Assembly (NCBI GenBank): GCA_946965045.2
Contig: OX337237.1
Location: forward strand, 620,001 to 684,000
Source of the DNA: Epithemia pelagica
Taxonomy: Eukaryota; Protista; Bacillariophyta
Length of the DNA: 64,000 nucleotides
Reading direction: 5' to 3'
The translations under genes were made by a program, and so were the position numbers. Numbering within the stretch: position 1 is the stretch's first letter; every line of letters starts with the position of its first letter. Positions 5,974 to 42,759 of this stretch are shown piece by piece. The notes beneath the pieces are model-generated. The model saw only the letters and a program-made list of their open reading frames with translations. It made no database searches and was not told where the DNA came from.

Positions 5974-6780
5974 CATGATGTAGTTTGCCATCTACAACTT
6001 GGATTAGAGTAAGAAACCAAATCGTCCCCTACCTAGTAGACAACTCGAACCATGGATGTGACATGCCCTACAAATGAGAAAATGGGCGAAAACACTACCA
6101 ATCTATCAATCCTAAGAAGAAACAGAAGGCACAAACAACAACTGAAGGAAAGACGCGCTCTGTCTACAGTCTACAATGATTCGTCCGCGGTTCATGTGCC
6201 ATGGCCGATAGTCTTACCGGTACCGTGATAGGGCCCTTCAGATTTTGCTCTCACGGTTTTTATGTGAGCTATGAGCTATCGCTCGCGAGCGTCTGGAATT
6301 TGAATCGTGTTGATCAGAGGACGCCCGCCAACCTTCAACTGTCACTTGCACGCCGGCCATTCTACATGACGATTTGCTTTTGGGAGATTTTATGGGGGAG
6401 AAGGACAGAGTTCTGTGCGGACGACGTACGTACGGTTTGTAGGTGGTCACCGATACAGAGCCTACACACACAGTCTCGTTGTTTTGTCTGTGTGTGGTGG
6501 TGGAGTGGCCTGCCGCTGTCATCTTTTGGTTGGAGTGTCGTCGTTTGGGTTGGCAAACTGGAACACACACAGTTGTCTTGGTTCCAGAAACAACAACAAG
6601 AAAGAAAACAACCAGACATATAACAAACAAACGCACTTTTGCACACTATAGTGGTGTAGAGTCGACGTTTGGGAGTTTTTCCTTGTTTTAGAGAGAGTCT
6701 GTTCCATTCTAAAATTCAATTTACCAACAACCGAAACACACACACACGCACCAAGTACAACACAAGAAGAAATACAAACC

Positions 6781-9074: not shown

Positions 9075-9716
9075 GTCAAACCAAAAAACAAGCCACCCAG
9101 TAATAGAGAGAGGCGAGTCTCTTCCTGTTCCAAGGGTTTGACAACCGTGTTCACAAGACAGCCTTTTGTCCTGCCTCCCACGTAAACTGGTATGGTGGCA
9201 CTCCTGGTTTCTTGTGTCACCTGGAACCAAACACAAAGTCCACATCGACGTCGTTTCTCTCTCCATGGTGTCGGTTGTGTTTGTTCTCGGTACCGCAGTT
9301 GGACAGCGCCGGCTGTGCCGTCGACACCATGACGACGACAGTGAGACACTGGAACCACAACACAACACAAGAGCGAGAAAATAACCTAGCACCACCACTT
9401 GCACCTCGTGATCCTTATCGTTGTTGTTGTCGTAGTTTTCTTGTTGCAGCAAGGCTCTTCCCCAACATGTTCTGGTATACGTATAGTTCTTTTGGGGCTT
9501 GTACACTACTTGATTGTTGTTCCAACTGTTGTCGTCGTCCTGGTCCTTCTTCTTCCAACGGTTGCGACCAGGGATCCTTGGAGGATGGAATGATTCTCCT
9601 GTTGTTGTTGCTGCTGCGGCGGTGTTGGTGTTGGTGGTTGTCACCTGGTGTGAGGGGCAAAACTCGAGGTCTACCGAAACAAAACAAGATAGATTGCGCA
9701 CCATGAGACCGAGCCG
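9075..9716 (-). pseudogene. Degenerate copy of the Ctr gene 3' end
   Basis: The reverse complement aligns by eye with about 12875-13370 (CTCGGTCTCATGGTG.GCAATC; GAGAATCATTCCATCCTCCA; GAAGAGCCTTGCTGCAAC). The 5' part of the gene is missing. Confidence 0.75.
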
Positions 9717-9785
9717 GGTGGTTACGAGGAGGTGTTGTTGTTGTAGCATGGAAGTTCTTCCAACTCCTCTCGTGCTGCCTAAAGA

Positions 9786-11261
9786 TTAGGCACAAGGCGC
9801 CAAATTGCTCAAGGAGGAAGATCCACCCGAGCCATCATGAGGCGGAGGTTTGGCATTGCCGTCCGTCGACGTTGGTGTGCTATTGGTGTTGGTAGTGGCC
9901 GGGTTCGTGCTGACCGGTACCGGAGCCGGTGCGGCCGTCGTAGAATTGGCAGTCGTCGTGGCTTGTGCTGGAGGCGCCGCAGCGGCAAAGGGCATCATGC
10001 CCCACGGAGCCGCGGACGCTGCTAAATGCGGCATCATCCACGGCATGGCTGTGGACATGGGATGTGCCGCCGCTGCCATTCCTTCGGGAGCCGCAAAGGG
10101 CATCATCATTCCGGGATGCATCATGGGCATAGCCGCCGCATTGGGAGGAGGAGCCGTCGTGGTAGCACCAGTAGTCGTCGGGTCACTGGCAGTCGCCGCC
10201 GGTGGGGTGGCACCAGTCGTCGTCGTAGGAGCACTTGTTGTTGCTTGAGTTCCGCCACCGACAATCATGGGGACCATCATGAGCATTCGATTGGCTCCGG
10301 CCGAAACAGGTGTCATCATGGCTTCCTTCAATTTGGCCGCCGTTTCTTCGCCCGCTTTTTGCGCCAGTTTCAACTTGGTTTGAAGGGTTCGGGTTTCGTG
10401 TCGCGACCGAGTCCGTTCCTGATCCAAAGTTTGCAATACTTGAATGGTCCGGGCAATCAAATCGGCTCGATTGGACGGTGTCGCAATACTACTCGTCGTC
10501 GCGGTCAAAGCAGACGATGACGAACTGGAAGCTGCGCTTGGAGCACCACCGCTGCTCGTCGTCGTACTGGCATTCACCGCAGCGGCTCCATCCTCGGGTT
10601 GTTCTTGTTGTTGTTGTTGTTGATGGACCAAACTATTGGCTTCGACTTGCCGCAAGACTTGAATCAATTCGGAAAATTGTCGATTGACATCGGATCGGCG
10701 TTGTTTTTCTCGAGATCGTTTGCGTTCCGATCGAGCCAAGACTTTGGATTCTTCCGGAATTGCTGCAGAGTCGTTGGGTTCCGTCGTATTGGTTATGGTA
10801 GGAGCAGGAGGAGGATGCTGCAAAGACGCTGCTGCGGCTGGAGCAACCGCAGCCGTGGTGGCAGGAGCCGCCGGTGGTGGCTGCGTCGTCGTCGTCGTCG
10901 TCGTGGTGGTTTCGGTATCCCACACACCACCAAGCAATTCGTGAATATCCGCTTCCGACAAGTGATTGTGAAGTGCTGGATGTTGGTGGTGGTGTGGCGC
11001 CGGCAAGGGTGACGGAGCCGTGTCGTGCGCATGAGGATTATTACACGAAGACGAGGTATCCAGCATGAGGTGAGAGGGAGGAGGGGCCAAGAAGAGTTGT
11101 TTGCCGCCATGAAACAGAGGAGACGATGCCGTCGTGATGGGATGATGATGATTGGGATGATCCACTGGTTCCGAAGCGGCAGCCAATGGATTGGGGGCAG
11201 TAGCAGGAGGATGATTTGCGACCGTATGGTCCGGAAGCATATTGGCGGGCTGAGGTACCAT
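9786..11261 (-). CDS. bHLH transcription factor (paralogue 2, inverted)
   Basis: Same bHLH core as 6781..8286 with indels in low-complexity tracts; 5' flanks are also homologous. Confidence 0.9.
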   Translation of the reverse strand: MVPQPANMLPDHTVANHPPATAPNPLAAASEPVDHPNHHHPITTASSPLFHGGKQLFLAPPPSHLMLDTSSSCNNPHAHDTAPSPLPAPHHHQHPALHNHLSEADIHELLGGVWDTETTTTTTTTTQPPPAAPATTAAVAPAAAASLQHPPPAPTITNTTEPNDSAAIPEESKVLARSERKRSREKQRRSDVNRQFSELIQVLRQVEANSLVHQQQQQQEQPEDGAAAVNASTTTSSGGAPSAASSSSSSALTATTSSIATPSNRADLIARTIQVLQTLDQERTRSRHETRTLQTKLKLAQKAGEETAAKLKEAMMTPVSAGANRMLMMVPMIVGGGTQATTSAPTTTTGATPPAATASDPTTTGATTTAPPPNAAAMPMMHPGMMMPFAAPEGMAAAAHPMSTAMPWMMPHLAASAAPWGMMPFAAAAPPAQATTTANSTTAAPAPVPVSTNPATTNTNSTPTSTDGNAKPPPHDGSGGSSSLSNLAPCA

Positions 11262-11693
11262 GGTTTGTCCGTTTTTTGTGTTGTATTGGGGGGTTTGTTT
11301 CTTTCGTTGGTTGATATGAATTAGAATGGAACGGACTCTCTATAAACAAAGGCAAAATCGGTCACAAAGCCTCTTGTTGTTGTTGTTGTTGTTTCTGGAA
11401 CCACGACGACTTTCCAATCGATCAGCGTTTGCCCAAAATAAAAACAATCCAACCAAAGATGACACAGCGGCGTCACTTTACACAAGAATAGACAGCAAGA
11501 CCGTGTATCGACCCTCCTCCAAACAAACTCTGTCTCTTTGTCCTTGCTGTTGAATCTCGTTTGAGAAAGACAAAAGTTTCTTCGGCGAATCTCTTGTTGA
11601 CCAAAACTCTACACCAAAGGCTAAACGCTAGAAACGAGGTGTTGAGGCTGCGGCTGCGAGACGATGAGGCCAAAAGATGCTGCCGTCTGCGCC

Positions 11694-11786
11694 GTACAAT
11701 ACAAAAAATACGCATCCGTAATCCGTACGAGAAAGGTACGCGTCCATGGTACATGGTACACTACTACACCGACCAAGACCTCGTAC
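11694..11786. promoter_or_regulatory. Cluster of six GTAC motifs (CuRE-like) upstream of Ctr
   Basis: GTAC at 11694, 11725, 11736, 11749, 11756 and 11783, about 330-420 bp upstream of the Ctr ATG. Confidence 0.5.
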
Positions 11787-12112
11787 GATCCATATTTGAG
11801 ACGACTGCAATGCGACCCAGTATCTGTATGCGACCAATACACCATTTATGCGACCCAAATTTCATTGCCCGACGACAACAGACAGTCGGTCAAAGCGCTA
11901 CGGACATCAAGGACGGACACTTTCTCTCTCTCTCGAGATCTTTTGTGCGGTCGAGGACAATGGCCGTGTGTGTCTATCGGTTCTTCAGATTCGCCATTGT
12001 TCCCCCTCCTCATCCGTGCGTCCTACCTACAGCGCATTAGTATTCCTTGTTCTGCTAGCGGAAAGCAACAATAACAACAACGCCCTTCTTTGTTTGACAA
12101 ATCATCATCAGG

Positions 12113-13024
12113 ATGGAGGAAGATCATTCGCATACCATTCCTCATCATCCGGATACTGCTCATGATGCTTTGCACCACAACGATGCATCACCCTTTTGTC
12201 AAGGCATGCCCATGACCATGTATATGGAAGGATTTCAATGGGCCCTGTGGAGGAGACCATCACAACAAGGCGAGGGCCAACACAATGCCACACCGTTGGG
12301 GTATCATCATGATGATGCAACTGTCAATTCCTCGACACCACTTCCACCGTGTTTGGTCTATTTGGTTCCCACGTGGATGCTGGACACGCGTGGATCCTTT
12401 GAAGGGGCCGTCGTCTTTTCCTTTTGGTTGGCCTTTTGGTTGGAAGTACTGAGTGCTCTACGAGATCATGTGCTGCGAATGCATCATGGCCTACTCCGAA
12501 TGAAGTTACCAACGAATCAACAACATCAACCACAACCGCATCAACAACGAGAAGAACAGCATGACGAACACGAACCACTCCTCGAGTCTGTAGTTACTCC
12601 ACAGGAGTCTGAACGAACAACCACGACGCGACGTCGTCGTCGCATTGTGGATGCTGTAGAACCAACTTCTCCATCTCTTGTCAATGCTACTACTGCTAAT
12701 ACTTCTGACAATAATACTCGCAACCACAACCGCCACCTTCAGTCCAGCCATCAGTTTCGCATCCGACGCCTCCTTGTCTCGTGCACCTTAACTCTCATTT
12801 ATGGCCTCCAAGCTCTGTTGGGATACCTGTTGATGTTTATGGCCATGAGTTTTTCCCTGGAAATTTTGGGGGCGACCGTTCTCGGTCTCATGGTGGGCAA
12901 TCTCGTCCTGTTTCGGTACCACGAGTTTGCCCCTCGGACCAAACGACAACCACCACAACAACAGCAACAACCACAAGAAGAGAATCATTCCATCCTCCAT
13001 GGCAGCCCTGCTCGCAACCGCTAA
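12113..13024 (+). CDS. CTR: Ctr/COPT-family copper transporter
   Basis: His-rich N-terminus, Mets motif GMPMTMYM, TM1, MxxxM (MFMAM) in TM2 and GxxxG (GLMVG) in TM3. The true C-terminus may lie in another frame (see findings). Confidence 0.9.
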   Translation: MEEDHSHTIPHHPDTAHDALHHNDASPFCQGMPMTMYMEGFQWALWRRPSQQGEGQHNATPLGYHHDDATVNSSTPLPPCLVYLVPTWMLDTRGSFEGAVVFSFWLAFWLEVLSALRDHVLRMHHGLLRMKLPTNQQHQPQPHQQREEQHDEHEPLLESVVTPQESERTTTTRRRRRIVDAVEPTSPSLVNATTANTSDNNTRNHNRHLQSSHQFRIRRLLVSCTLTLIYGLQALLGYLLMFMAMSFSLEILGATVLGLMVGNLVLFRYHEFAPRTKRQPPQQQQQPQEENHSILHGSPARNR

Positions 13025-24300: not shown

Positions 24301-24599
24301 GCCATATGATGCAGTCGTAAAATTTGAAAAGCACTTTGGTCAAGCTCTTTCATGGTTCTTCCACTTGGAGAAGGAGAGTCCCAGTCTAGAATAGGGACCA
24401 CCACATGGCTACCGTAGCCAATGCGCGACCGCGTTTGCGAGTGACGTGTTGGAAGCAAACTTTTTTCACAGCAAGAAAAGCATTCCCCATAGCGATGAAA
24501 CACATCCACGCCACGGCTGCTTCTCACTGCCAATTGGGGCTTCATTCACCAAGTCGCATCGGCAACGGATTCAATCCATCCGAGACAGATTCAAAAAAG

Positions 24600-24886
24600 T
24601 CGCTTGCTCTTCTGCCGGAGCGCGAGGATTACCTGTCGACGTGGCGATTCACGTTGCGGCGCAAGTCTGTGCCGATTGGATCTTGGAACAAGCAGCCACC
24701 ACCCACAACGACAGCGAAGACGACACCAACAAGAAGAAGGACACTTCAATTCCAACCACCGACCAGGACGACGCGAATCCTGGCGCCACGGTCGTATTTG
24801 GACTCTTGGAACACGCCCATGCCGAACAATTGGCGGCCGCTCTGACGGAGAGATTGGAAGCGCGAGAGCAACCACAAGAAGAATGA
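24600..24886 (+). pseudogene. Macro-domain gene, 3' fragment
   Basis: AGARGLPVDVAIHVAAQVCADW…VVFGLLEHAHAEQL matches the C-terminus of 50816..51883. Confidence 0.8.
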
Positions 24887-25436
24887 GTTGGACCAAGCCG
24901 CTGACTCCCTACCTAGAGGTAGCTGTGGGTGTGATCGTCCGTACCAATTCCACACACACGGGGGAGATGGTGGCGGAACAACAGAGGTTCCGAATCCACA
25001 CGCATCCGCACGACGATGACGATCTGTGTGTGCGTCCAAAACCCGTCACGACCCCCCATACACAATAAGCCATACACCAAGACACATACGCATACGTGCG
25101 CCCGAGCGCTAGCCTCCTCACTAGATCTAGAGGATGGCGGTGGAGGAGGATTGGTCTCTTGAACTCTGTGTGTGTGTTGAGTTTCTCCATCCCCTATATT
25201 CCACCAGCGTTCTAGGACTACAGCAGTCAATGCCACAACCGTGTGGGAGATCTGCCAAGTTTTCTCGTCAACGATCGGCTCACAGACTCTGTACCAAAAC
25301 CTGAGAAACAACAGTTTTGTGGATCGTGGACACACTCCCGGATCGGACTACCTATACTACCCAAAACCCAACCAACGGTTGTGCAAGAAACAACCACATT
25401 GTTTCTTCCATAGTCGCTGGATGACACAGTTTTAGG

Positions 25437-26573
25437 ATGGAGGATGTAAAAGAGCAAGCACGTTTGTCTGGACTCGTTTTGGGCAACAATCACGATGAAT
25501 CACGATGGAGTTTCAATGAAGCCGGAATTCGTGAGCGATGGTGGAACGCATCGGTTGTGGTACATGCTCCTTACAATGAAAAGGAAGAAATTATTGTCGT
25601 GTTGGGGGGCCACATATACGGGGCTTTGGATCCGGATCCTACCACAACAGTTTTGCTTCTAAAAAATAGTGATGGAAGCGAACACAAGCGAGGTCCCAAG
25701 ATGAACAAACAGCGAGTAGGACTTGCAGCGGTTGTTTGTAACGGCTGTGTCTACGCCATTGGAGGACTTCTTCAGTATTCTATTGAGCGGATTGAAGTCT
25801 CAGATTTACTGTCAAGTGCCTATTTGAACAAGACTGAGAAGAAAACACCGTGGAAAATATTGCAGTGTCGTTTGTCTACTGGTGGTTCATGCTCAGCTAC
25901 CGTGGTCCAAAACAGGTACATTGTAATTGGTGGAACAGATTGTAATGGAAATGTGGATATTCTTGACATAGCTCAAGCAAGTCAACCTTTCATTTTCCAA
26001 GGACCATCCATGAATGTTCCTCGTATCTACTTCGGAATGGCGGCCATTGGTTCACGTGTCTACGTCATTGGTGGAAAGAAGATTATTGGAGGACATGAGA
26101 TGTTAACTTCCGTCGAATACTTGGACTTGTCGGCTGATTCAGGCAACGATGGAAGTGATTTTCAAGAATCGACCCTTGCACCTTCTTTGTCATGGAAAAT
26201 GCACAATAATCTGGTTCTTTCTCTTCCTCGTTTCAGACATTCTGTTGTCCGCCTTGGAACATGCCTGCTTGTGGTCGGAGGTCGTAGTGACGATCGATTT
26301 TCTGTTGAAAATGAGGGTGACGCCAGAGTGCGTTTCGTGGAGGTTCTTGACACGAAACACAATAAAGTCTGGAGGCTTCCTGGAATGACAAAAGGACTAG
26401 GCGGGCATTTCGCAGCAGTTGCTTATTCCAATGGGATTATTGTTAACAATGAATTTGCTCTTGGAGATGAGTTGAAACCCTGCCAGACCTTTGAAAGGTT
26501 TCCATTGATGGATAAGAACTCTGCCCTGTACAAGCTTCTGCTGGATGGTCCTTCATTGAGACAATTTGATTGA
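25437..26573 (+). CDS. Kelch-repeat beta-propeller protein, copy A
   Basis: Repeated GG…Y/V..IGG…VEYLD…W…PR kelch motifs; 378 aa, open. Confidence 0.88.
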   Translation: MEDVKEQARLSGLVLGNNHDESRWSFNEAGIRERWWNASVVVHAPYNEKEEIIVVLGGHIYGALDPDPTTTVLLLKNSDGSEHKRGPKMNKQRVGLAAVVCNGCVYAIGGLLQYSIERIEVSDLLSSAYLNKTEKKTPWKILQCRLSTGGSCSATVVQNRYIVIGGTDCNGNVDILDIAQASQPFIFQGPSMNVPRIYFGMAAIGSRVYVIGGKKIIGGHEMLTSVEYLDLSADSGNDGSDFQESTLAPSLSWKMHNNLVLSLPRFRHSVVRLGTCLLVVGGRSDDRFSVENEGDARVRFVEVLDTKHNKVWRLPGMTKGLGGHFAAVAYSNGIIVNNEFALGDELKPCQTFERFPLMDKNSALYKLLLDGPSLRQFD

Positions 26574-29500
26574 CTGTCAGCATTAGATGATACTTGTGAC
26601 CCATCATAGTACTGAAAGATGACTGGAGTTGTGTTCCTCCCTCTTTTTGCCGCTGCGAGAGTTCGAAAGACCTATAATGATGCCGGCAGTCCAGAGACAT
26701 TTTTCATCCGAGTTACGATGGAAACCATCATCGTTTCGTTTGCCCTCCTTGTACAATAGGAGTAAAGAATTAGTTGTAGGAGAACTTACTCCTACTATAT
26801 AGGAGTAATAGGAGTAGGAACCTTTTGTGACTTTTGATTGACTCTCTCGACACATAGCTAGCTAGTAAATGCGCGACCGGATTGCCGAGTGACGTGTTGG
26901 AAGCAAACTTGGACTCCAACAAAAGCGTTCCATCCCTCCCTTCAGTTGAATCGACTAGAAGCTTGACGACAAATTTTGGGTCTTTGGTGAATGTTTTTTG
27001 CGTTTGAATTACCCGCCTGAGACAGGCGACCCACTGTAACCAAACATTTGTCGACACAGACCAGCCGACACAGGTTGATTGTGTCTCCAAAGTTTGAAGG
27101 ATAACAAATGCTGCATTTTCCCAGCCATCGTCTAATATGAGGTTGTGTGCAAGGAGAATTAAGGCTCACATACCCCTTCAGCATGAAACAGGGTTTGTCC
27201 TTATTCTCGTCCTTGGCGATGCACGCAAATTGTGCAACCCTTTCAAACAACCGTGTCAGGTATGTAAGCGACTCCTCCCTTGCGCTTTCGGCTTTTGCCT
27301 TCTCCCCTCGCCGGTTGTAATTAAAGAACACCCTAAAAACATAATGTTTCGTTGCTGCAGTCATTTTTTTCTTAATCGGTAACTCTTTCTGCAACCCTTT
27401 CATTTTATGAGAACAATGGACACCACCCCTGAGTCACCAGATCTTTGTCTACGACAAGATACAGTAATCGATATGTGGCCAAATGCATCAACAAGAAAAG
27501 CTGCAAAGATCCACTGCATCATCCCAAAGATTATCTGCCTCGTCTCCCAACAGAAATTGTAAATTCTCAAAAGAAACTATAACGCGCCCTTGGCTGCGCT
27601 CCTGGATTATTTTTTGGGCCCCAGCTCGCGCTGATTTACAGAAGAGGCCTTCTAGAGCAGCCTGGTTATCGACATTTACGCGAACACAAACAGATGCCGC
27701 AGGGTGCAGGTGCAAGGCCCCATGGAAAGTTTTGTGCTGATCAAATGTAACGGCAATTGAATCAGGAGGAAGGTCATCCAGTTTTCGTACCGTGAACATG
27801 CTGAAAAGAGCCACGACAACATGCTGAACTTCCGGAAATCGATTATTTTGAAGGACTGCGCGAGCCTTGTTGATGGTTTCTGGTATGTTTAGATGACCAT
27901 GGACTCGTTTGCGTTGATCGGCTATCAAAACATAATTGCCTGGATTCCCGTCCAGTTCCAGTGTGTAGAAGATATCGATTCCCTTGCCGTTGTCGCCATT
28001 CAATACAACCAACCCTTCTTTGATCCAGTTTACTGGCCTCGGGTAGTCCTTAAAGAGAATCGAAGCAGGCAAGGAATCATTAAGTGGCTCATTCATCTGA
28101 ACCACCCGCATTGGCTTGAGACGGACAGTAAAATTGGACACGTTGGTCTCTGCACCATTGAAGAGCTTCTTCAGTGTTGAAACGTTTGTAGCCGATGTGA
28201 TACAAAGCGCATTGATACGAAGCGCAACGAAACAAGCGCCAAATAGTTCCCATTGCTGCCAAGGAGCATTCGAAGGATTAAAAACGTTGTTATCCACAAA
28301 ATCCCCAAGATACTTCAAAGCGTCCATGAAAGCGTCTTCTGCTGGGGGCAACCTGTGATTGCTTTTGTCCACTTTGCTCAGATGATAGAAGAAGCAATAT
28401 GGAAGTTGAAGCCTTCTGTCGTCGCCAAGGATGCAAACAGAGCCATCACGGAGACGTCTAAAAGAGAGATGTTTGATCTTTGATTCTTCAATTCTCGCAA
28501 ATGGCGTATCCTCCTCCGTGACTGTTGCCCCGTTGACTGAGTAGGCCACCAACCAAATAAGCTCGCGTAAGGTAAAACCTGTTTTCTCTTTCCTTTTTTT
28601 TGCTTTTGGCGTTACATCGCTTCTCGGAACGGTGCTGTACACATTATCGAAGAATTCTCCGAACTTTTCTTCAAAGGTGTTTTTGTACTCTTCTTTCGCC
28701 GAATGCGGTGATTCATCTCCATTCGTCTTCTGCCATGTGAGGCATTCGTCTGCATATTCTGTGCATGGGCGTGGAACACCACCCAGAAAGAATAGATGTC
28801 TGCAAAAAATATCTTGCAGGAGAAGTTCTTTCATGCCGTCGCCTCTTCCATACACCGCCTTTCTCATTGCCTCTGTGTCGAGCAGTGGCATTCGGACCCG
28901 CTTAGTGCTTATAGCCGCTGCGTATGCATTTGACGATGCTGAGGCTGCCAATGACATCTTTGACCAGTCCGTACCCGCAAACATGGGAAGCATCACCACA
29001 CTGTTTTGTTTTGTCATTTCACTGAACATAGCATCGAGAAAATTCGCCAACGCATCTTCCCCGTCGACATGATTTGGGGGAATGCGTTGATACTCATCGA
29101 TCCCAACGAAGAGAGCACATTTGTCTTGATCATTTAATCCAAGAACCCTCTGAATTACTTTAAAAACGTCACCAAGTGTGAGTTCATCGGCATTCCTTGG
29201 CAACGATGTCCAAAAGTGTTGCCAACCATTTAACTTGCTGTTTCTTTCAAGAAAAATAGCATAGAGAAGCCGCCAAGCGAAGCCAGCATGGGCACCCATA
29301 GACCTCTCCTCAGATACCACCGAATGGCCATTTCCATAACTCAAGACAAGCGCCAACCTTTGTTTTGTAGGTGGAAAATTTACATCGCTCCAGATATTTG
29401 CATCGTCGTTGAATTTCTTCACCCACTCATCCAACAAACGGGTTTTGCCAATGCCGGACATTGCAGAACAAACAGGAAAGGGATAATCCCTTCGATCGCT

Positions 29501-29850
29501 TTTACCCTTTGTAGCGGATTCAAATAGTTTTTTTAGACAACTTTCGGTTGTTTTCATCGCTTGTTGGCGGCCTTCAAGGGTAAACTCCATACTTTCAGGA
29601 GACAGTAGATGAGCGCCAGAGGCCAACACCGCTTGGTCGTTCATACGTTCTTTCAACCATGCGAACAACGCATCCGCTGATGAAAGCTTCAAATGTTTTC
29701 CTGTTGGGATCTTTTTGAGACTAAGCTGAACAGAGTTTGAGGCAGTTGGATGGGCTGCAACCATAGGATTGGACACATTGGACGTCAATGGCGTGGAGGC
29801 GGGAAATTGTTGGGACATCATCTTCGGCGGCGAGGTGGAGGTTAAGGTCG
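26568..29850. repeat. 3.28-kb segmental duplication, copy 1 (partner 31436-34718, offset 4868)
   Basis: All ORFs in the block recur at +4868 with near-identical translations; boundaries read by eye. Confidence 0.95.
26770..27364 (-). pseudogene. CRESS-virus Rep-like (HUH-fold) ORF with altered catalytic motifs; probable +1 frameshift in a T6 run near 26995
   Basis: KHYVFRVFFN…FACIAKDE…MLKGYVSL…WLGKCSI…GDTINLCRL…TVG follows the spacing of circovirus Rep motifs I-III, but HxQ and YxxK are replaced. Confidence 0.55.
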
Positions 29851-29947
29851 TGGTGGTTCGTGGTGTCGACCCCTGCCAAGCGTGACAGGGTGACACGGCA
29901 AGCAAGAGCATCGTCCAAAACGACAAAACAAGAAACAAAGCATTCAT
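27488..29947 (-). CDS. Crinkler/RHS-like P-loop NTPase plus restriction-endonuclease-fold protein, copy 1 with signal peptide
   Basis: Walker A SGIGKT, Walker B FVGIDEYQ, GGVPR, and C-terminal WELFGA…GIDIF…DQRK. The likely start is MNALFLVLSF… at 29947; the track ORF extends upstream to 30163. Confidence 0.78.
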   Translation of the reverse strand: MNALFLVLSFWTMLLLAVSPCHAWQGSTPRTTTTLTSTSPPKMMSQQFPASTPLTSNVSNPMVAAHPTASNSVQLSLKKIPTGKHLKLSSADALFAWLKERMNDQAVLASGAHLLSPESMEFTLEGRQQAMKTTESCLKKLFESATKGKSDRRDYPFPVCSAMSGIGKTRLLDEWVKKFNDDANIWSDVNFPPTKQRLALVLSYGNGHSVVSEERSMGAHAGFAWRLLYAIFLERNSKLNGWQHFWTSLPRNADELTLGDVFKVIQRVLGLNDQDKCALFVGIDEYQRIPPNHVDGEDALANFLDAMFSEMTKQNSVVMLPMFAGTDWSKMSLAASASSNAYAAAISTKRVRMPLLDTEAMRKAVYGRGDGMKELLLQDIFCRHLFFLGGVPRPCTEYADECLTWQKTNGDESPHSAKEEYKNTFEEKFGEFFDNVYSTVPRSDVTPKAKKRKEKTGFTLRELIWLVAYSVNGATVTEEDTPFARIEESKIKHLSFRRLRDGSVCILGDDRRLQLPYCFFYHLSKVDKSNHRLPPAEDAFMDALKYLGDFVDNNVFNPSNAPWQQWELFGACFVALRINALCITSATNVSTLKKLFNGAETNVSNFTVRLKPMRVVQMNEPLNDSLPASILFKDYPRPVNWIKEGLVVLNGDNGKGIDIFYTLELDGNPGNYVLIADQRKRVHGHLNIPETINKARAVLQNNRFPEVQHVVVALFSMFTVRKLDDLPPDSIAVTFDQHKTFHGALHLHPAASVCVRVNVDNQAALEGLFCKSARAGAQKIIQERSQGRVIVSFENLQFLLGDEADNLWDDAVDLCSFSC

Positions 29948-30675
29948 GATGAATGAAATCGGTGTTTTCGTGGATAGATTCTTGACTTGTTGGTTGTTGT
30001 TCGAGAGAATCTCAAGACGTTGTCGTTGTTTGTCTCTTGGTGGTGGTGAGAAGGAGAGTGGTTCTTGTTTTGTTCTGTGGAGGGAGGTTTGTCGTTGAAG
30101 AGAGGGAGAGGAGGAGAACTCGTTGGATTCTCTTTTGGCTTGTTGGTTGCAGTGTCTCGTCATTGTTGGTCGTTGTCTTAGAGTGGTTCTTTTGCTCTCA
30201 AGGAAGGTTGTTGTTCTTGTTGTTCTTGTAGTTGTTGCAAGAGAGTCTCTGGAAACTCGCTCGCTCGCCTTGTCTTGTTTGGAGTGCCCAAAGGGATGAC
30301 AACCACAACTATACTATCCTAAATCGTGGCTATGCACACTGAACCGTATTGAGTACGAGTTAACAATGCGAATACGACATTTTTTCGACAATCACGACAT
30401 TCTCACGACAGTCATCAGGACATTCAAGGCCACAAAGTCGTCTTACTCCCATTGTCGGACGACATCGTCACGACAACCACGACGACAGGTAGATGAACGC
30501 TATCAGATATCGTTCCATTCTATCCACCGAAAGCAATCCCCGCAACAGCATCACCATGGCCAAGGGACGATTCAACAAAGGTAATGAATGCTTCCGATGA
30601 TCACTGGCTTCTAACAGACAAAGAGTTGACCATGCTAGTAAACTATTTGGTTTTCCTACTTGTCATTTTTGTCTC

Positions 30676-31435
30676 CTAAAACCTATCATCTTCCACATTG
30701 TCGGGATCCTCGAAGCAAGGCTCTATCGGGTCTCCACTGTCAATGATTTTTTCTTCCTGCTCAATTGCGTCGTCAGGTAAGTCTCCATCTTCAATGAAAT
30801 CATAAGCCTTTTTCCCGGTTTGATCAAAACTTGGGAATTTCAAATGCAGCATTTTAGATAGTTTGTCTCGGTTCCAATTGTTGGAATGCCACTTTCTGTG
30901 AGCCACAACTGTATGTGCGACGTCAAGCTCGAAATCCTGGATTTCCCAAGTGTCGTGTCCGTCACCGTGCATACCCTTGAGTGGTACGATCCATTAGGAT
31001 GCTTGGGATTGGGTCGGAGCTTTGCTGGCTCGCTTTCTGGCTGAAACTCGAGCATTTATGGCATCATACCGAGCTTTACGTTTCGATCCTTCCGGCGCGG
31101 AATAGTAAAGTTCGCTGTATATCCGCTCTGCTTGGTTTGTCAAAACCAAGTCATTGTCCCACATCTCGTCGAACGTTGTGATACTCTCCTGCTGGGTGGC
31201 GATCACCTCAAAATTCCCAGATCGGGAGAGGTTGTAGCTCCCTAGCACAGTGTATGTGTCAGTAATGACTGATTTTACATCAAGGGATGCTTTGCTGCTA
31301 CTATTGGCACCAAAAGTAGACATGGCGACCAACCGAATTTCGACATTCTCCAAGAGAGCCCTCTTGTTTCCAATCTCAGTGACCCACTTCGCAAGAGCTT
31401 TTCTGGTGTCCGTGGAACGATGCAGGAGAACTCGA
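30676..31435 (-). pseudogene. PLD-superfamily (HKD) nuclease-like relic
   Basis: SLDVKSVITDTYTVLGSYNLS fits HxKxxxxDxxxxxGSxN with His changed to Asp; in-frame stop near 30994; 5' end cut by the duplication junction. Confidence 0.6.
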
Positions 31436-34400
31436 GATTGACTGTCAGCATTAGATGATACTTGTGACCCATCATAGTACTGAAAGATGACTGGAGTTGT
31501 GTTCCTCCCTCTTTTTGCCGCTGCGAGAGTTCGAAAGACCTATAATGATGCCGGCAGTCCAGAGACATTTTTCATCCGAGTTACGATGGAAACCATCATC
31601 GTTTCGTTTGCCCTCCTTGTACAATAGGAGTAAAGAATTAGTTGTAGGAGTACTTACTCCTACTATATAGGAGTAATAGGAGTAGGAACCTTTTGTGACT
31701 TTTGATTGACTCTCTCGACACATAGCTAGCTAGTAAATGCGCGACCGGATTGCCGAGTGACGTGTTGGAAGCAAACTTGGACTCCAACAAAAGCGTTCCA
31801 TCCCTCCCTTCAGTTGAATCGACTAGAAGCTTGACGACAAATTTTGGGTCTTTGGTGAATGTTTTTTGCGTTTGAATTACCCGCCTGAGACAGGCGACCC
31901 ACTGTAACCAAACATTTGTCGACACAGACCAGCCGACACAGGTTGATTGTGTCTCCAAAGTTTGAAGGATAACAAATGCTGCATTTTCCCAGCCATCGTC
32001 TAATATGAGGTTGTGTGCAAGGAGAATTAAGGCTCACATACCCCTTCAGCATGAAACAGGGTTTGTCCTTATTCTCGTCCTTGGCGATGCACGCAAATTG
32101 TGCAACCCTTTCAAACAACCGTGTCAGGTATGTAAGCGACTCCTCCCTTGCGCTTTCGGCTTTTGCCTTCTCCCCTCGCCGGTTGTAATTAAAGAACACC
32201 CTAAAAACATAATGTTTCGTTGCTGCAGTCATTTTTTTCTTAATCGGTAACTCTTTCTGCAACCCTTTCATTTTATGAGAACAATGGACACCACCCCTGA
32301 GTCACCAGATCTTTGTCTACGACAAGATACAGTAATCGATATGTGGCCAAATGCATCAACAAGAAAAGCTGCAAAGATCCACTGCATCATCCCAAAGATT
32401 ATCTGCCTCGTCTCCCAACAGAAATTGTAAATTCTCAAAAGAAACTATAACGCGCCCTTGGCTGCGCTCCTGGATTATTTTTTGGGCCCCAGCTCGCGCT
32501 GATTTACAGAAGAGGCCTTCTAGAGCAGCCTGGTTATCGACATTTACGCGAACACAAACAGATGCCGCAGGGTGCAGGTGCAAGGCCCCATGGAAAGTTT
32601 TGTGCTGATCAAATGTAACGGCAATTGAATCAGGAGGAAGGTCATCCAGTTTTCGTACCGTGAACATGCTGAAAAGAGCCACGACAACATGCTGAACTTC
32701 CGGAAATCGATTATTTTGAAGGACTGCGCGAGCCTTGTTGATGGTTTCTGGTATGTTTAGATGACCATGGACTCGTTTGCGTTGATCGGCTATCAAAACA
32801 TAATTGCCTGGATTCCCGTCCAGTTCCAGTGTGTAGAAGATATCGATTCCCTTGCCGTTGTCGCCATTCAATACAACCAACCCTTCTTTGATCCAGTTTA
32901 CTGGCCTCGGGTAGTCCTTAAAGAGAATCGAAGCAGGCAAGGAATCATTAAGTGGCTCATTCATCTGAACCACCCGCATTGGCTTGAGACGGACAGTAAA
33001 ATTGGACACGTTGGTCTCTGCACCATTGAAGAGCTTCTTCAGTGTTGAAACGTTTGTAGCCGATGTGATACAAAGCGCATTGATACGAAGCGCAACGAAA
33101 CAAGCGCCAAATAGTTCCCATTGCTGCCAAGGAGCATTCGAAGGATTAAAAACGTTGTTATCCACAAAATCCCCAAGATACTTCAAAGCGTCCATGAAAG
33201 CGTCTTCTGCTGGGGGCAACCTGTGATTGCTTTTGTCCACTTTGCTCAGATGATAGAAGAAGCAATATGGAAGTTGAAGCCTTCTGTCGTCGCCAAGGAT
33301 GCAAACAGAGCCATCACGGAGACGTCTAAAAGAGAGATGTTTGATCTTTGATTCTTCAATTCTCGCAAATGGCGTATCCTCCTCCGTGACTGTTGCCCCG
33401 TTGACTGAGTAGGCCACCAACCAAATAAGCTCGCGTAAGGTAAAACCTGTTTTCTCTTTCCTTTTTTTTGCTTTTGGCGTTACATCGCTTCTCGGAACGG
33501 TGCTGTACACATTATCGAAGAATTCTCCGAACTTTTCTTCAAAGGTGTTTTTGTACTCTTCTTTCGCCGAATGCGGTGATTCATCTCCATTCGTCTTCTG
33601 CCATGTGAGGCATTCGTCTGCATATTCTGTGCATGGGCGTGGAACACCACCCAGAAAGAATAGATGTCTGCAAAAAATATCTTGCAGGAGAAGTTCTTTC
33701 ATGCCGTCGCCTCTTCCATACACCGCCTTTCTCATTGCCTCTGTGTCGAGCAGTGGCATTCGGACCCGCTTAGTGCTTATAGCCGCTGCGTATGCATTTG
33801 ACGATGCTGAGGCTGCCAATGACATCTTTGACCAGTCCGTACCCGCAAACATGGGAAGCATCACCACACTGTTTTGTTTTGTCATTTCACTGAACATAGC
33901 ATCGAGAAAATTCGCCAACGCATCTTCCCCGTCGACATGATTTGGGGGAATGCGTTGATACTCATCGATCCCAACGAAGAGAGCACATTTGTCTTGATCA
34001 TTTAATCCAAGAACCCTCTGAATTACTTTAAAAACGTCACCAAGTGTGAGTTCATCGGCATTCCTTGGCAACGATGTCCAAAAGTGTTGCCAACCATTTA
34101 ACTTGCTGTTTCTTTCAAGAAAAATAGCATAGAGAAGCCGCCAAGCGAAGCCAGCATGGGCACCCATAGACCTCTCCTCAGATACCACCGAATGGCCATT
34201 TCCATAACTCAAGACAAGCGCCAACCTTTGTTTTGTAGGTGGAAAATTTACATCGCTCCAGATATTTGCATCGTCGTTGAATTTCTTCACCCACTCATCC
34301 AACAAACGGGTTTTGCCAATGCCGGACATTGCAGAACAAACAGGAAAGGGATAATCCCTTCGATCGCTTTTACCCTTTGTAGCGGATTCAAATAGTTTTT

Positions 34401-34718
34401 TTAGACAACTTTCGGTTGTTTTCATCGCTTGTTGGCGGCCTTCAAGGGTAAACTCCATACTTTCAGGAGACAGTAGATGAGCGCCAGAGGCCAACACCGC
34501 TTGGTCGTTCATACGTTCTTTCAACCATGCGAACAACGCATCCGCTGATGAAAGCTTCAAATGTTTTCCTGTTGGGATCTTTTTGAGACTAAGCTGAACA
34601 GAGTTTGAGGCAGTTGGATGGGCTGCAACCATAGGATTGGACACATTGGACGTCAATGGCGTGGAGGCGGGAAATTGTTGGGACATCATCTTCGGCGGCG
34701 AGGTGGAGGTTAAGGTCG
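31436..34718. repeat. 3.28-kb segmental duplication, copy 2
   Basis: Direct repeat of 26568-29850. Confidence 0.95.
31638..32232 (-). pseudogene. CRESS Rep-like ORF, copy 2
   Basis: Duplicate of 26770..27364, including the T6 run. Confidence 0.55.
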
Positions 34719-34794
34719 AGACAGAAACAGGAGGAGGAGGCAAAGACTTCTGCCGCTTCGAAGGCGATTCAGATTCATTCTGAACAAAGCTCAT
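32356..34794 (-). CDS. Crinkler/RHS-like NTPase plus REase protein, copy 2 (no signal peptide)
   Basis: Identical to copy 1 from TLTSTSPP onward; unique N-terminus MSFVQNESESPSKRQKSLPPPP. Confidence 0.8.
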   Translation of the reverse strand: MSFVQNESESPSKRQKSLPPPPVSVSTLTSTSPPKMMSQQFPASTPLTSNVSNPMVAAHPTASNSVQLSLKKIPTGKHLKLSSADALFAWLKERMNDQAVLASGAHLLSPESMEFTLEGRQQAMKTTESCLKKLFESATKGKSDRRDYPFPVCSAMSGIGKTRLLDEWVKKFNDDANIWSDVNFPPTKQRLALVLSYGNGHSVVSEERSMGAHAGFAWRLLYAIFLERNSKLNGWQHFWTSLPRNADELTLGDVFKVIQRVLGLNDQDKCALFVGIDEYQRIPPNHVDGEDALANFLDAMFSEMTKQNSVVMLPMFAGTDWSKMSLAASASSNAYAAAISTKRVRMPLLDTEAMRKAVYGRGDGMKELLLQDIFCRHLFFLGGVPRPCTEYADECLTWQKTNGDESPHSAKEEYKNTFEEKFGEFFDNVYSTVPRSDVTPKAKKRKEKTGFTLRELIWLVAYSVNGATVTEEDTPFARIEESKIKHLSFRRLRDGSVCILGDDRRLQLPYCFFYHLSKVDKSNHRLPPAEDAFMDALKYLGDFVDNNVFNPSNAPWQQWELFGACFVALRINALCITSATNVSTLKKLFNGAETNVSNFTVRLKPMRVVQMNEPLNDSLPASILFKDYPRPVNWIKEGLVVLNGDNGKGIDIFYTLELDGNPGNYVLIADQRKRVHGHLNIPETINKARAVLQNNRFPEVQHVVVALFSMFTVRKLDDLPPDSIAVTFDQHKTFHGALHLHPAASVCVRVNVDNQAALEGLFCKSARAGAQKIIQERSQGRVIVSFENLQFLLGDEADNLWDDAVDLCSFSC

Positions 34795-35623: not shown

Positions 35624-36581
35624 AAAGAAAACAAGTACTACATGGCAGATACATATATTGACCAAGAAACATATGATTCAGACTCAAGACGCACTTGAAA
35701 CCACGAATGTCCTTCTCAAACAAAAAGATTGATCCGTTCCACAGGGATTCCTTGTATATTTATCTGCCTATCGTTCCCTGTACCATAAAACGCAACAGTC
35801 CATGTAACTTCTTGTATTAGAAATACCATTTTAAAACTGAGTATATGGTCGATCCACTCCACGACACTACTAGTGATTTCAGTGTCATCTTCACGGGGCG
35901 GTTCAGCAATGAGGAAGGACGTTTGTCCAGCTCTCTCCGTGGGGAATCATGATTTCAAGAGCTCGAACCTTTTGAGCGGGGGAAAACTCGCTCCAAGACC
36001 ACATCTAGCTACTCCGAGTAAAGATGCGCGATCGCATTTCCGTCTTGGAAGCAAACTTGGACTCCCCAAGAACAGCATTCCATCCACAGAGGAGTAAGTA
36101 ATGTATCTCGTCTCTATTAGAGATGGAACAGCCCAGATTATCTTCACGGATCCAATGGACGATCGTACCGGCAATCCACTGCTTTGGTCTCTTATGAGGA
36201 TGGGTGTGTTGGTTGTTGGTTCGTCGGGTGGAAAGCGATTCGTTGACGCGAAGAAGAGATGTTCGGTACGGACATGCCTTTTCGGATTCTCATTCCCAAT
36301 GAATGATTACCGCTGGAAATGTATCCATCTGTTCTATTCTTTCCTGCACAGCACACTGACAACTGAGCGCTCGGATCCTAACGTTCCAATCCCCCAAGAG
36401 GAATGAGAACCATCACACCGGGGGAGACGCGAACCTTCGTCCATGTGTGTCAACCATTTTCGTCGGGCAAACATGGCGCATCCGGTTCAACTCATAAAAA
36501 TCAAACAAACACCCCCCAAAACACTAGAACCCAGCACAACCAAACACAGACAAGAAACTGTTCGAATCCTCCACTGTCGTC

Positions 36582-36794
36582 ATGCCGGTCGAAACCAAGA
36601 ACGAAACGAAACCAAACACTACTACCAAGATGTCCACCGAGTCCGAGAACAAGGTATCCACGCACTTTTTGGTCATTAATCGAAACTTGCGTCCCGAAGG
36701 AATTCATTTCGCCGCCGAAGGAGGTGGCTACTACGTCCCACCCACCAACTGGAACCAGAATGCCGCCGTTCGACCGACGGCCACGGCCAAATAA
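36582..36794 (+). CDS. 70-aa microprotein, copy 2
   Basis: KVSTHFLV.(D/N)RNLRPEG.HFAAEGG…YY.PPTNWN…AAVRPTATAK is shared; one in-frame 3-nt indel; TAG versus TAA stop. Confidence 0.75.
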   Translation: MPVETKNETKPNTTTKMSTESENKVSTHFLVINRNLRPEGIHFAAEGGGYYVPPTNWNQNAAVRPTATAK

Positions 36795-37634
36795 AAAGAA
36801 AAAACTACCAGTCTACTTACTACATGCCAGCAGAGACACATGTACTGACCAAGAAACCCATGATTCATACTCCTCAAGCCAGACGCACATGGAACCAAGA
36901 CGCACGAATCTTCTTTTGAAACATCAAGATACACGAGCCACGGGGATACCCTCTGTATACCTATCGGCATATTGTATATCGGCATATCCTTCCTCCTGTT
37001 ATCACAAAAAAACACAGTCCCTGTAACTACTAGAGTACTACCATTCCAAACTATCTCCACTCCACGACACTACTACTACTAGGTAGTGATTCCTCCTTCT
37101 CGCGTATCGATCCGCGTGAGTGCCATCCCTCTGCCTCACGATGGTATACGGTTCCGCAATGGGGACAAAGCACTTTGGTCCAGTCTATACCGCGGTAGGT
37201 AGGCGGCTTTAGTGCCCGGAAACTATAAGCGCGCCCAGGGGCTTTCGGAAAGCGCTCCCACACAAAACTCGACAGACCAAAAAACCCGCGCGAGTGACAT
37301 CCTCTCCCCGCGGATCAAATCCTCCACATTGATACACAACAAAACACAACTCATTGGATTGTGTGGTCTTGCTTCTCGAAGTCTTTCCCCCTATATTCAT
37401 CCTCTTTCTTCTCCACAACACTGCAGAACGGACGAGAACCAAGGCGAGAGAGAAAGAGAGAAAGAAAGAGAGAGAGAGAGTTTCATTCTGCCTGGAGAGT
37501 TTTGTGGTGGAGGAATACCCGGTTCCGTTCGTGTCCCTGTGGAACCCACACTCTTTCTGTGGCGCTTCGTTTGTTGGAACGTCGAGTGTCTTGCTGTTGT
37601 GGAATCCGGATCGTTGGAACCAACCACCGAGAAG

Positions 37635-40587: not shown

Positions 40588-41235
40588 GGTGTAGAATCAA
40601 TATAATATTTTCGATGATCACAAGAGGAAAGGAGCCGTGGCGTTGTTGGCGTGGATCTGTGTCGTCATTCGTTTCATGGAACGCTTTCCTTGGAGTTTGG
40701 AGTCGTCCAAGTTTGCTTCCAACACGTCACTCGCCAATGCGGTCGCGCATTTACTAGCTATGTGTCGAGAGAGGGCTCTACCTCTACCATCTACCACGCT
40801 CAAAAGGTTCCCATTCTATTCTTCACTTTGCCTCCATCCAGGTCCAGGACAACAAGACTTTTGAAACATGCTTTGCCACAACCCTTTTGATACTACCGAA
40901 TATGGGCCAAAACTGCAACAAGAATGACCCAATGGGGAAGCAACAAACCACGGGACCAAACAATCGAAGAGATGGGGACGGAAACAGAGTGGACCGAATG
41001 TAGGTCCTTCTCGCTCGACTGCAAATTTCTCGAGTAATACTAACTTTGTGCGTGTTTCAAACGAAACGATTATGGTTTCCATCGTCTCTCGGATGAAAAA
41101 TGTCTCGAGAGTGCTGGAATTATTGGGTCGTTCGAACTCTCGCAGCGGCAAAAAGAGGGAGGAATACAACTCCATTCAATAATTTCAGTACTATATAATG
41201 GGCCATTCTACACAAACATGACCTGATGCTGACAG

Positions 41236-42366
41236 TCAATCAAATTGTCTCAATGAAGGACCATCCAACAAACGCTTGTACACGGCAGAGTTCTTATCCA
41301 TCAAAGGAAGCCTTTTAAAGGTCTGCCAGGGTGTCAACTCATCTCCAAGAACAACCGTTTCATTGTAAACAATCCCATTGGAATCAGCAACTGCTATGAG
41401 ATGCTCGCCTAGTCCTTTTGTCATTCCAGGAAGCCTCCAGACTTTATCGCGCTTCGTGTCAAGAACCTCCACGGAACGCACTCTGGCGTCACCTTCATTT
41501 TCAACAGAAAATCGATCGTCACTACGACCTCCGACCACAACCAGGCAAGATCCAACGCGGACAACAGAATGTCTGAAACGAGGAACAGAAAGGACCATAT
41601 TATTGTGCATTTTCCATGACAAAGAAGGTGCAAAGGTTGATTCTTCAAAATCACGTTCATCGTTACCGGAATCAGTCAACAAGTCCAAATATTCGACAGA
41701 ATCAAGCTCCTCTGGTCCAATAATCTTCTTTCCACCAATGACGTAGACACGTGAACCAATGGCCGCCATTCCAAACTTTTCACGAGGAACATTCATAGAT
41801 GGTCCTTGGAAAATGAAAGGTTGACTTGCTTGAGCTGTGTCAAGAATATCCACATTTCCATTACAATTTGTTCTACCAACTACAATGTACCTTTTTTGGA
41901 CAACAGCAGCTGAGCATGAGCCACCAGTAGACAAACGGCACTGCAATGTTTTCCATTGTGTTTTCTTCTCAGTCTTGTGCAAATAAGCACTTGACAGTAA
42001 ATCTGAGACTTCAATCCGCTCAATAGAATCCCGACTCCATCCTCCAATGGCGTAGACACAGCCGTTACAAACAACCGCTGCAAGTGCTGCTCGCCCTTCA
42101 TTCATCTTGGGACCTCGCTTGTGTTCGCTTCCATCACTATTTAGAAGCAAAACTGCTTGAGTAAGATCCGGATCCAAACCCACGTATATGTGGCCCCCCA
42201 ATACGACCATAATTTCTTTCTTTTTATTGTAAGGGGCATTTACCACAACCAATGCGTTCCACCATCGCTGACGCATTCCGGCTTTATTGAAACTCCATCG
42301 TGATTCATCTTGATTGTTCCCTAAAACGAGTCCAGACAACCGTGCTTGCTCTTGTACATCCTCCAT
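41236..42366 (-). CDS. Kelch-repeat protein, copy B
   Basis: Paralogue of copy A; start MEDVQEQ at 42366; open. Confidence 0.88.
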   Translation of the reverse strand: MEDVQEQARLSGLVLGNNQDESRWSFNKAGMRQRWWNALVVVNAPYNKKKEIMVVLGGHIYVGLDPDLTQAVLLLNSDGSEHKRGPKMNEGRAALAAVVCNGCVYAIGGWSRDSIERIEVSDLLSSAYLHKTEKKTQWKTLQCRLSTGGSCSAAVVQKRYIVVGRTNCNGNVDILDTAQASQPFIFQGPSMNVPREKFGMAAIGSRVYVIGGKKIIGPEELDSVEYLDLLTDSGNDERDFEESTFAPSLSWKMHNNMVLSVPRFRHSVVRVGSCLVVVGGRSDDRFSVENEGDARVRSVEVLDTKRDKVWRLPGMTKGLGEHLIAVADSNGIVYNETVVLGDELTPWQTFKRLPLMDKNSAVYKRLLDGPSLRQFD

Positions 42367-42759
42367 CCTAAAACTGAGTCCTCCAACGACTATGGAGGAA
42401 ACAATGGTTGTTTCTTGCACACGCGTTGCTTTGGTTTTGGAGTGTATACCACGATCCGAAAGTCTGTCCACGATTCACAAAACCGTTGTTTCTCAGGTTT
42501 TGGTGTATAGAGTCTGTGAAACTTCAGAAACTAGGGCAGATCTCACGCAGCCCTATAGTTGTATCGCGCTTTGTTGCCACCGAAAACCCTAGACGGAGTA
42601 TGGGATAGTTTTGGTTTGCCTGTCAGACCCAAAGTATCTACTCCACCAAAACGACTCCGAATTTCCTCTCTTCCAGCACACTCTTTGTTTTGTCACAATG
42701 GTCGATTCAAAACCGCGTGTTTTTGAGTGCTATCTCTCTTGGTTCAGTGTTCACACAAG

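Follow-up and report, generated by a model that had tools for sequence, protein, structure and literature searches.

A probable tandem duplication with templated insertion and a chimeric Crinkler-like ATPase gene in the diatom Epithemia pelagica

Background

How can two neighbouring copies of one gene come to share the same body and yet begin in two different ways? The question is raised by a stretch of 64,000 nt from the diatom Epithemia pelagica (contig OX337237.1, positions 620,001 to 684,000; hereafter the window, whose positions are written with w), in which a gene for a Crinkler-like protein with a P-loop ATPase domain and a plausible nuclease domain is present twice on the minus strand. 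An earlier reading of the letters (the original prediction) proposed that a duplication had exchanged the N-terminal header of a putative DNA-cutting toxin, so that one copy was retargeted from nucleus or cytosol to the secretory pathway or the plastid. Here we call the two genes copy 1 and copy 2, and their N-terminal starts header 1 and header 2. The locus is probably a tandem duplication with a templated insertion, which yielded a chimeric gene; a change in the destination of the protein is, on sequence grounds, a candidate only.

Results and Discussion

Two genes that differ at the 5' end only

The window contains a direct repeat of 3283 bp with an offset of 4868 nt (w26568-29850 = w31436-34718), whose two copies differ at one position (26783/31651). 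That a perfect 3.3-kb repeat arose by chance is ruled out. Each repeat copy carries one intact minus-strand gene, and the two genes differ at the 5' end only, the 786 residues of their shared body being identical. The identity breaks exactly at 29850/34718, where the original prediction had placed a sharp junction. Beyond the stop of the ATPase gene the repeat continues for about 920 bp, which include a 153-aa open reading frame (ORF), here ORF X, and the last 6 nt of a Kelch gene with its 3' flank. Between the two repeat copies lies a spacer, U (w29851-31435), for which no second match was found inside the window. The parts of the locus are listed below, with the strand for those features that have one.

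26568-29850: left repeat copy, which keeps the original left-hand (Kelch gene) context; the Kelch paralogue homology is unbroken across w26568 (w25233-26742)
31436-34718: right repeat copy, in which the original 5' context is preserved, namely header 2 with the region upstream of it
29851-31435, minus strand: spacer U, 1585 bp; it includes the end of a PLD-like ORF, an ORF of 98 aa, an upstream tract rich in A and C, and codons 1-33 of a donor ATPase gene
27488-29947, minus strand: copy 1, the chimeric gene, 819 aa from the Met of MNALF, intact at this length in both haplotigs
32356-34794, minus strand: copy 2, the ancestral-type gene, 812 aa, starting with MSFVQ
29849-29947, minus strand: header 1, 33 codons, signal-peptide-like and donor-derived
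34717-34794, minus strand: header 2, 26 codons, with a conserved KRQK patch
29846-29850: junction 1, 5 nt common to the donor and the ancestral gene, joined in frame
31436-31440: junction 2, 4 nt of near-register microhomology between the repeat end and the donor
30994-31435, minus strand: 3' part of the PLD-like ORF in U; the donors hold the full ORF of 292-294 aa (PLDc_2, E = 8e-4, below the Pfam cut-off)
30676-30972, minus strand: 98-aa ORF in U, whose near-identical relatives on other contigs led to the donor loci
26942-27403, minus strand: ORF X, 153 aa, 85 nt downstream of copy 1, with a twin at w31810-32271
25437-26573, plus strand: Kelch-repeat gene; at its left end the repeat takes in the final 6 nt of this gene and its 3' flank, and a second, truncated version of this tail is found at w31436-31632

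Donor of the captured 5' end

The entire spacer (w31440-29846) is a copy of an internal stretch of a dispersed locus, with which blastn gave identities of 97.8% for L008, 95.5% for L007 and L006 and 94.2% for L011. A search for the donor of 29851-30360 had been suggested, and the locus that was found covers the whole of w29851-31435. At the donor loci the sequence runs on past both sides of the match, into the PLD-like ORF of 292-294 aa upstream and into a long ATPase gene downstream. The MNALF start is in frame with that ATPase gene (866 aa in L007, 865 aa in L011), which bears out the proposal that copy 1 captured the upstream region and the N-terminal coding start of another gene. The donor paralogues L006 and L008 are interrupted, and their pieces were translated separately.

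The donors belong to a large diatom group of AAA_22/ORC-like ATPases. Their kinship with the Crinkler-like family is at the level of profiles and concerns the ATPase domain only (hhalign, 90.5% probability, E = 1.3e-6). ORFs of 819 aa beside the 98-aa ORF were also considered as header-1 forms of the same gene and were rejected, as BLASTP places them in a different family.

Which start is ancestral

A header-2-type start with the KRQK patch is found in every close relative (P0001-P0004, P0007, P0014, P0047 and both proteins of Nitzschia inconspicua), and a related Nitzschia metagenome scaffold carries a single header-2 gene. Because all close orthologues carry header 2, it is the ancestral start. 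On the same scaffold (L013) positions 5198-8256 match w35105-32067 at 96% identity, and the unit stands alone there between unrelated Snf7 and Sec7 genes; the 3-kb gene unit therefore occurs in different genomic contexts.

The flanks give the direction of the duplication. At the left end of copy 1 the Kelch homology is unbroken, and the copy 2 side holds a truncated Kelch tail only. Each copy has thus preserved the old context on its outer side, to the left in one and to the right in the other. The arrangement is that of a tandem duplication with U at the new joint, and the filler at this joint is a copy of another locus, attached at microhomologies.

The sister haplotig and the later history of the copies

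By exact protein matches the window belongs to contig ctg1316l (753 kb) of the ENA assembly ERZ21939226, and the same matches lead to a sister haplotig, ctg1308l (640 kb). This haplotig is 99.1-99.7% identical to the window across the aligned blocks around these genes; in the block that lies upstream of copy 2 the identity is 97.5%. None of the four genes is broken, each haplotype having one of 819 and one of 812 aa. Over w30718-26943 the identity with ctg1308l (positions 9101-12865 of h2) is 99.3%, and the 868 bp that adjoin the header-1 junction contain 9 differences. A mis-assembled junction had been named in the original prediction as a result that would refute it. Because this second, independently assembled haplotig carries the same junction with its own differences, junction 1 is not an artefact of assembly.

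The surroundings in ctg1308l are different. Its two copies are mutually inverted and about 16 kb apart, between two inverted copies of a 2978-bp element and with further insertions, and w30719-31650 has been lost beside a transposon insertion and the inversion. This arrangement is best read as secondary.

Concerning the inserted sequences themselves, the 2978-bp inverted repeat (L002 6123-9100, with a twin at 24375-27352 of the merged sister haplotig) is 99.8% identical between its copies and codes for a protein of 730 aa that has a GCR1_C domain. The element has eleven nearly identical members on at least 8 contigs, and in the sister haplotig it brackets the copy-1 inversion. It is a transposon, which we presume to be perhaps Crypton-like. 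Its 730-aa gene was also considered as a source of the PLD-like pieces of the spacer and was rejected, as there is no similarity. An insertion of about 11 kb (L002 12866-22331), at the site matching w26943-26945, carries a 1256-aa ORF for a hAT-type transposase and a 624-aa ORF with a weak HhH-GPD match.

The comparison of haplotypes also bears on the age of the event. Every donor found is 2.2% or more away from U, and both haplotypes carry the event, which is older than their split. Yet the bodies of copy 1 and copy 2 differ at 0 sites in the window haplotype and at 3 in the sister haplotype. Among the four genes 7 coding sites are variable, 4 of them haplotype-specific, 3 singletons and none copy-specific. 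This pattern most likely reflects gene conversion between the copies (concerted evolution), which would have kept the bodies alike since the event. If so, the intactness of copy 1 is weak evidence for selection.

The encoded protein

The protein has three parts, given here for copy 2 with the equivalents in copy 1.

34588-34794, minus strand: disordered N-terminal tail, residues 1-69, pLDDT < 50; the junction, at residue 26, lies inside this tail
33475-34572, minus strand: P-loop ATPase domain, residues about 75-440; in copy 1 w28607-29704
32605-33132, minus strand: putative restriction-endonuclease-like domain, residues about 555-730; in copy 1 w27737-28264

In an alignment of 31 relatives, Walker A (G158xGK161), Walker B (D277-E278) and AGT317-319 are conserved; GxGK(T) 158-161 and DE 277-278 are kept in at least 26 of the 27-28 sequences with a residue at those columns. 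Pfam, searched with the full length and with the protein split into domains, gave AAA_16 and AAA_22 matches, both below their cut-offs, and sequence searches of the PDB (with the single protein and with a profile) returned nothing significant. The AlphaFold model reaches a pLDDT of 82.5 and a pTM of 0.83, and Foldseek matches its ATPase domain with ORC, Cdc6, CED-4, NRC, Avs, TnsC and MuB (E 1e-5 to 5e-4). Judged by motifs and modelled fold, the protein is a P-loop ATPase of the ORC/Cdc6/STAND type (AAA+/STAND), and the NTPase assignment of the original prediction is confirmed by the conserved Walker motifs together with the resemblance of the model to ORC/Cdc6, CED-4, NRC and Avs.

For the proposed nuclease the agreement is partial. 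The C-terminal domain, which has no Pfam match and is preceded by a helical region, was modelled alone with a pLDDT of 88, and its order of helices and strands is compatible with a PD-(D/E)xK core. E560 is part of a helix, D651 opens a strand and D670-Q671-R-K673 close the next one; they are kept in 28-30 of 30 sequences, with atypical spacing. The order of secondary structure and the acidic and lysine residues fit the claim, but the structural matches are weak: the best Foldseek matches are mostly restriction endonucleases (MspJI, EcoO109I, BspD6I, PspGI, BbvCI, McrC, AddB) at E of about 0.02, none reaching E <= 0.001. A nuclease is a plausible identity for the modelled domain.

The closest named proteins are those of N. 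inconspicua, with roughly 92-93% identity and the UniRef label 'Crinkler (CRN) family protein'. Aphanomyces, Rozella and Lithocolla have relatives of 30-33% identity; no named CRN from Phytophthora was among the relatives returned. The ubiquitin-like LxLFLAK header of Crinklers was absent from the Pfam scan of 31 family members, and also from P0008, P0015 and P0020. Because residues 1-69 are predicted to be disordered and that scan was negative, the N-terminus does not qualify as a CRN header, and the protein is filed as Crinkler-like in its body, not as a CRN effector. The original prediction had appealed to the header exchange of CRN effectors; as no family member has the Crinkler header, the parallel holds as an analogy only, and the word toxin is likewise no more than an analogy.

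The N-terminus of copy 1

The ATG of MNALF is the first in-frame ATG of the sister haplotig and of each of the four donors; it has an A at -3, and the A/C-rich tract of about 430 nt before it lacks any ATG. In the window the frame of copy 1 is open up to an ATG at w30163 (ORF w27488-30163, 891 aa). This ATG is private to the window haplotype and depends on a T/C difference at w30162, where the sister haplotig and the four donors have ACG; it is the only haplotype difference in the 555 nt upstream of the junction.

Residues 5-16 of header 1 have a mean hydropathy of 2.36 (12 residues); the highest value reached among the first 60 residues of copy 2 is 0.57. If cleavage after residue 23 is assumed, C and A stand at -3 and -1 and W at +1. 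Residues 24-80 of copy 1, 57 residues that belong mostly to the old shared tail, include 20 S/T, 0 acidic and 4 basic residues. Diatom plastid proteins have bipartite presequences with an ASAFAP motif, and ASAFind accepts F, W, Y or L at +1 and sets a cut-off of 2 for the transit score (PMC4329603); the score was computed by hand from the published matrix. Header 1 resembles these presequences in its hydrophobic start, small residues at -3 and -1, aromatic residue at +1 and the hydroxyl-rich, acid-free, net-positive stretch that follows. It differs from them in having W and not F at +1 and in a transit score of 1.62, and its likeness to a signal peptide is by hydropathy proxies only. In the ASAFind check proposed in the original prediction, the W at +1 is an accepted residue and the score falls below the cut-off, and header 1 would be classed as 'plastid, low confidence' at best.

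A model for the origin of the locus

In the scenario that we propose, the ancestral order would have been the Kelch gene, the 3.3-kb segment with ORF X and the ATPase/nuclease-like gene, and the header-2 start with its promoter. The 3.3-kb segment would then have been duplicated head to tail, and the new joint between the copies filled by a stretch of 1585 bp whose template was a dispersed locus in another part of the genome and which was joined at both ends through microhomologies of 4-5 bp. Read from these scars, a filler of kilobase scale with microhomologies points to template switching during replication or to the end joining of three fragments. As the filler stops 33 codons into the second ATPase gene, with the reading frame unbroken at the join, the downstream copy would have lost the promoter and the basic N-terminus that belonged to it and received instead the upstream tract of the donor, together with a hydrophobic start like that of a signal peptide. 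The folded part of the protein would have remained untouched, because the join falls inside the disordered tail.

Weighing the alternatives

Several points weigh against a templated duplication that gave copy 1 a translated start for the secretory route, and each has to be set beside the explanation that it would favour. Junction 2 is seen only in the window's haplotig, and near-perfect identity of copies is what over-polishing is expected to produce, both of which could indicate an assembly artefact, that is, a collapsed or chimeric join of haplotypes or paralogues. We consider this extremely unlikely, given that junction 1 recurs in another contig, which has SNPs of its own and is differently arranged around the junction, that the join is in frame with microhomology at both ends, and that the period of 4.9 kb is short in comparison with contigs of 640-753 kb. 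The nearest donor found is just 97.8% identical to U, so that the actual template may no longer exist or may not have been sampled. Even a useless copy 1 would be kept intact by gene conversion from copy 2, and the chimeric copy could then be a neutral by-product without a function of its own, its body overwritten time after time from its neighbour. The lack of copy-specific substitutions beside four haplotype-specific ones agrees with such an origin, as do the identical bodies in the window haplotype and the related Nitzschia scaffold, on which the header-2 gene has no partner. However, the chimeric gene is intact, its 33 header codons are identical in both haplotypes despite the transposon insertion and inversion around one of them, and the sole change in the 555 nt upstream of the junction creates or removes an upstream ATG; we regard a neutral by-product as possible but rather unlikely.

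Doubts about the start of copy 1 come from the same upstream sequence. In the window haplotype a start at the ATG 216 nt upstream could make the protein 72 residues longer, with the hydrophobic segment buried within it. In the donors the upstream frame is open for about 120 further codons of A/C-rich sequence, and because stops are rare in such sequence an open frame alone is no proof of translation. No transcript or protein with header 1 was found in the collections searched, nor any expression evidence for copy 1, and the exact proteins of both copies are absent from the protein collection. A word search with header 1 (query residues 1-104, candidates of 264-840 aa) gave no match, and a scan of JGI metagenomes with back-translated header 1 gave 600 pattern matches, of which 0 were confirmed. 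The change might then be regulatory only, with the same protein made from both copies, for instance from a shared internal Met (776 aa), and header 1 serving as an untranslated leader. The public gene calls (ENA) of both copies do start at this Met, and the donor genes too are called from an internal Met. These calls, however, come from an ORF-type caller and not from transcripts. The MNALF codon comes first in frame after the long ATG-free tract, and its -3 base is better than that of the donors' internal Met; moreover, header 2 is conserved as protein in the orthologues, so that N-termini upstream of the internal Met are translated in the family. A purely regulatory change is, in our opinion, unlikely. 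That the hydrophobic start of copy 1 is translated and takes the protein into the endoplasmic reticulum (ER) has, in our estimate, a little less than an even chance. Whether it could go on to the plastid is a separate matter. Header 1 and the S/T-rich ancestral tail would then act together as a bipartite presequence, which the accepted W at +1 and the composition of residues 24-80 allow, and some donor-family members of other diatoms (P0085, P0096) begin with a hydrophobic segment followed by F. Against this stand the transit score below the cut-off and the KKRK loop that the body keeps exposed, and relatives suggest a protein acting on DNA in nucleus or cytosol. The plastid appears a very unlikely destination, and for the retargeting of a toxin to plastid or secretion, as first proposed, the in-silico support is mixed and the idea stays a hypothesis.

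A third paralogue and a wider reading

A third paralogue, P0049 (locus L005), lies on the same contig and has the same downstream context, with ORF X and a Kelch gene. Its 5' block, 2.1 kb and about 30 putative codons of the ORF, is 97.3% identical to the 5' region of a donor-family gene, P0076 (L012). The block spans L005 4000-6092 and L012 1992-4092, ends at the same nucleotide +/- 2 in both, and contains a 237-bp piece that is also found in U (w30346-30582); it may be a discrete, possibly mobile segment. The three paralogues on one contig of 753 kb have three different starts, that of the third paralogue being a predicted one. At minimum, the 5' end has been replaced more than once in this ATPase gene family, each time with sequence associated with the same second family.

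It could be proposed from here that diatom Crinkler-like ATPase/nuclease genes repeatedly swap their N-terminal 'address' for 5' modules of a second ATPase family, one such swap having produced a secreted or organellar DNA-cutting protein used against parasites or competitors. We hold this to be improbable as a whole. If it were true, it would be a parallel to the shuffling of headers and toxins in oomycete CRNs, built without the CRN header.

Other features of the region

Each copy of the ATPase gene is followed after 85 nt by ORF X, which in the third paralogue lies at L005 8431-8892. ORF X has no Pfam match and may be a conserved partner gene of the ATPase gene. The Kelch gene at w25437-26573 is one of four paralogues in the window, which together with their 3' flanks (w25233-26742, 41058-42519, 48068-49583 and 56179-57659) have 85-88% nucleotide identity. 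A dispersed repeat of about 85 nt, 76-88% identical between copies, occurs at w24402-24486, 26851-26931, 31719-31799, 36017-36085 and 40676-40773. Farther along, two small plus-strand genes (w35229-35732 and 36403-37026) form a tandem pair of 70-89% nucleotide identity, for which Pfam gave no match.

On the other side of the locus, a minus-strand ORF of 1138 aa (w18464-21880) without a Pfam match lies between two perfect direct repeats, which are located at w17733 and w22385 and are at least 300 nt long. The block w17738-23140 is absent from the sister haplotig, and the region w17733-23140 looks like a haplotype-specific insertion of the long terminal repeat (LTR) type.

Comparison with known systems

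Chimeric genes that arise by tandem duplication with capture of a foreign 5' end are known from studies of new genes in Drosophila and in plants. The present case is like them in that a duplicate gains a foreign promoter and first codons in frame while the parent remains intact alongside. It is unlike them in that the foreign 5' end came as a filler of 1.6 kb at the duplication joint, from a dispersed and distantly related ATPase family. Complex rearrangements that combine duplication and insertion are attributed to replication template switching (FoSTeS/MMBIR). The direct duplication, the segment templated from elsewhere and the 4-5 bp of microhomology at each join all conform to that description, with the difference that here the mechanism would be reconstructed from scars, and three-fragment end joining would leave the same marks. 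The locus is a well-documented chimeric gene and a new instance of known processes. Its value lies in a legible record of how a new gene received a new N-terminus, since a single assembly shows the parent, the donor, the scars of both joins, the polarity and also a second haplotype. Should the hydrophobic start be in use, one rearrangement would have given a ready-made, disordered, transit-peptide-like tail an entry signal for the ER.

Concerning the body of the protein, the locus contributes a diatom example to the open discussion of the role that Crinkler-type ATPase/nuclease proteins play in free-living eukaryotes. AACRNL, from free-living animals, is a Crinkler-like gene whose header is degenerate and which multiplies together with transposons (PMC12957317). 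The diatom gene likewise has a CRN-type body without a working CRN header, belongs to a free-living eukaryote and is multiplied in transposon-rich surroundings (here hAT and GCR1_C elements). It differs in its domains, ATPase and nuclease-like, where the enzymatic domain of AACRNL is an ADP-ribosyltransferase, and no evidence was found that the diatom gene promotes its own amplification.

C-termini that combine an NTPase, a helix-turn-helix (HTH) and a restriction endonuclease (REase) form the largest class of Crinkler effectors (PMC5289972, a review summarising Zhang et al. 2016). The oomycete CRNs have a ubiquitin-like LxLFLAK header in the place where the diatom protein has a disordered tail, and the diatom host is free-living. 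The exchange of N-termini is also of a different kind, as in the diatom it would have come about by segmental duplication and insertion at arbitrary points of microhomology and not at the conserved HVLVxxP hotspot. The likeness to the CRNs lies in the order of the parts, with a P-loop NTPase followed by a helical linker and a restriction-endonuclease-like domain (the last a weak match here), and in the presence of variable N-termini on a constant body.

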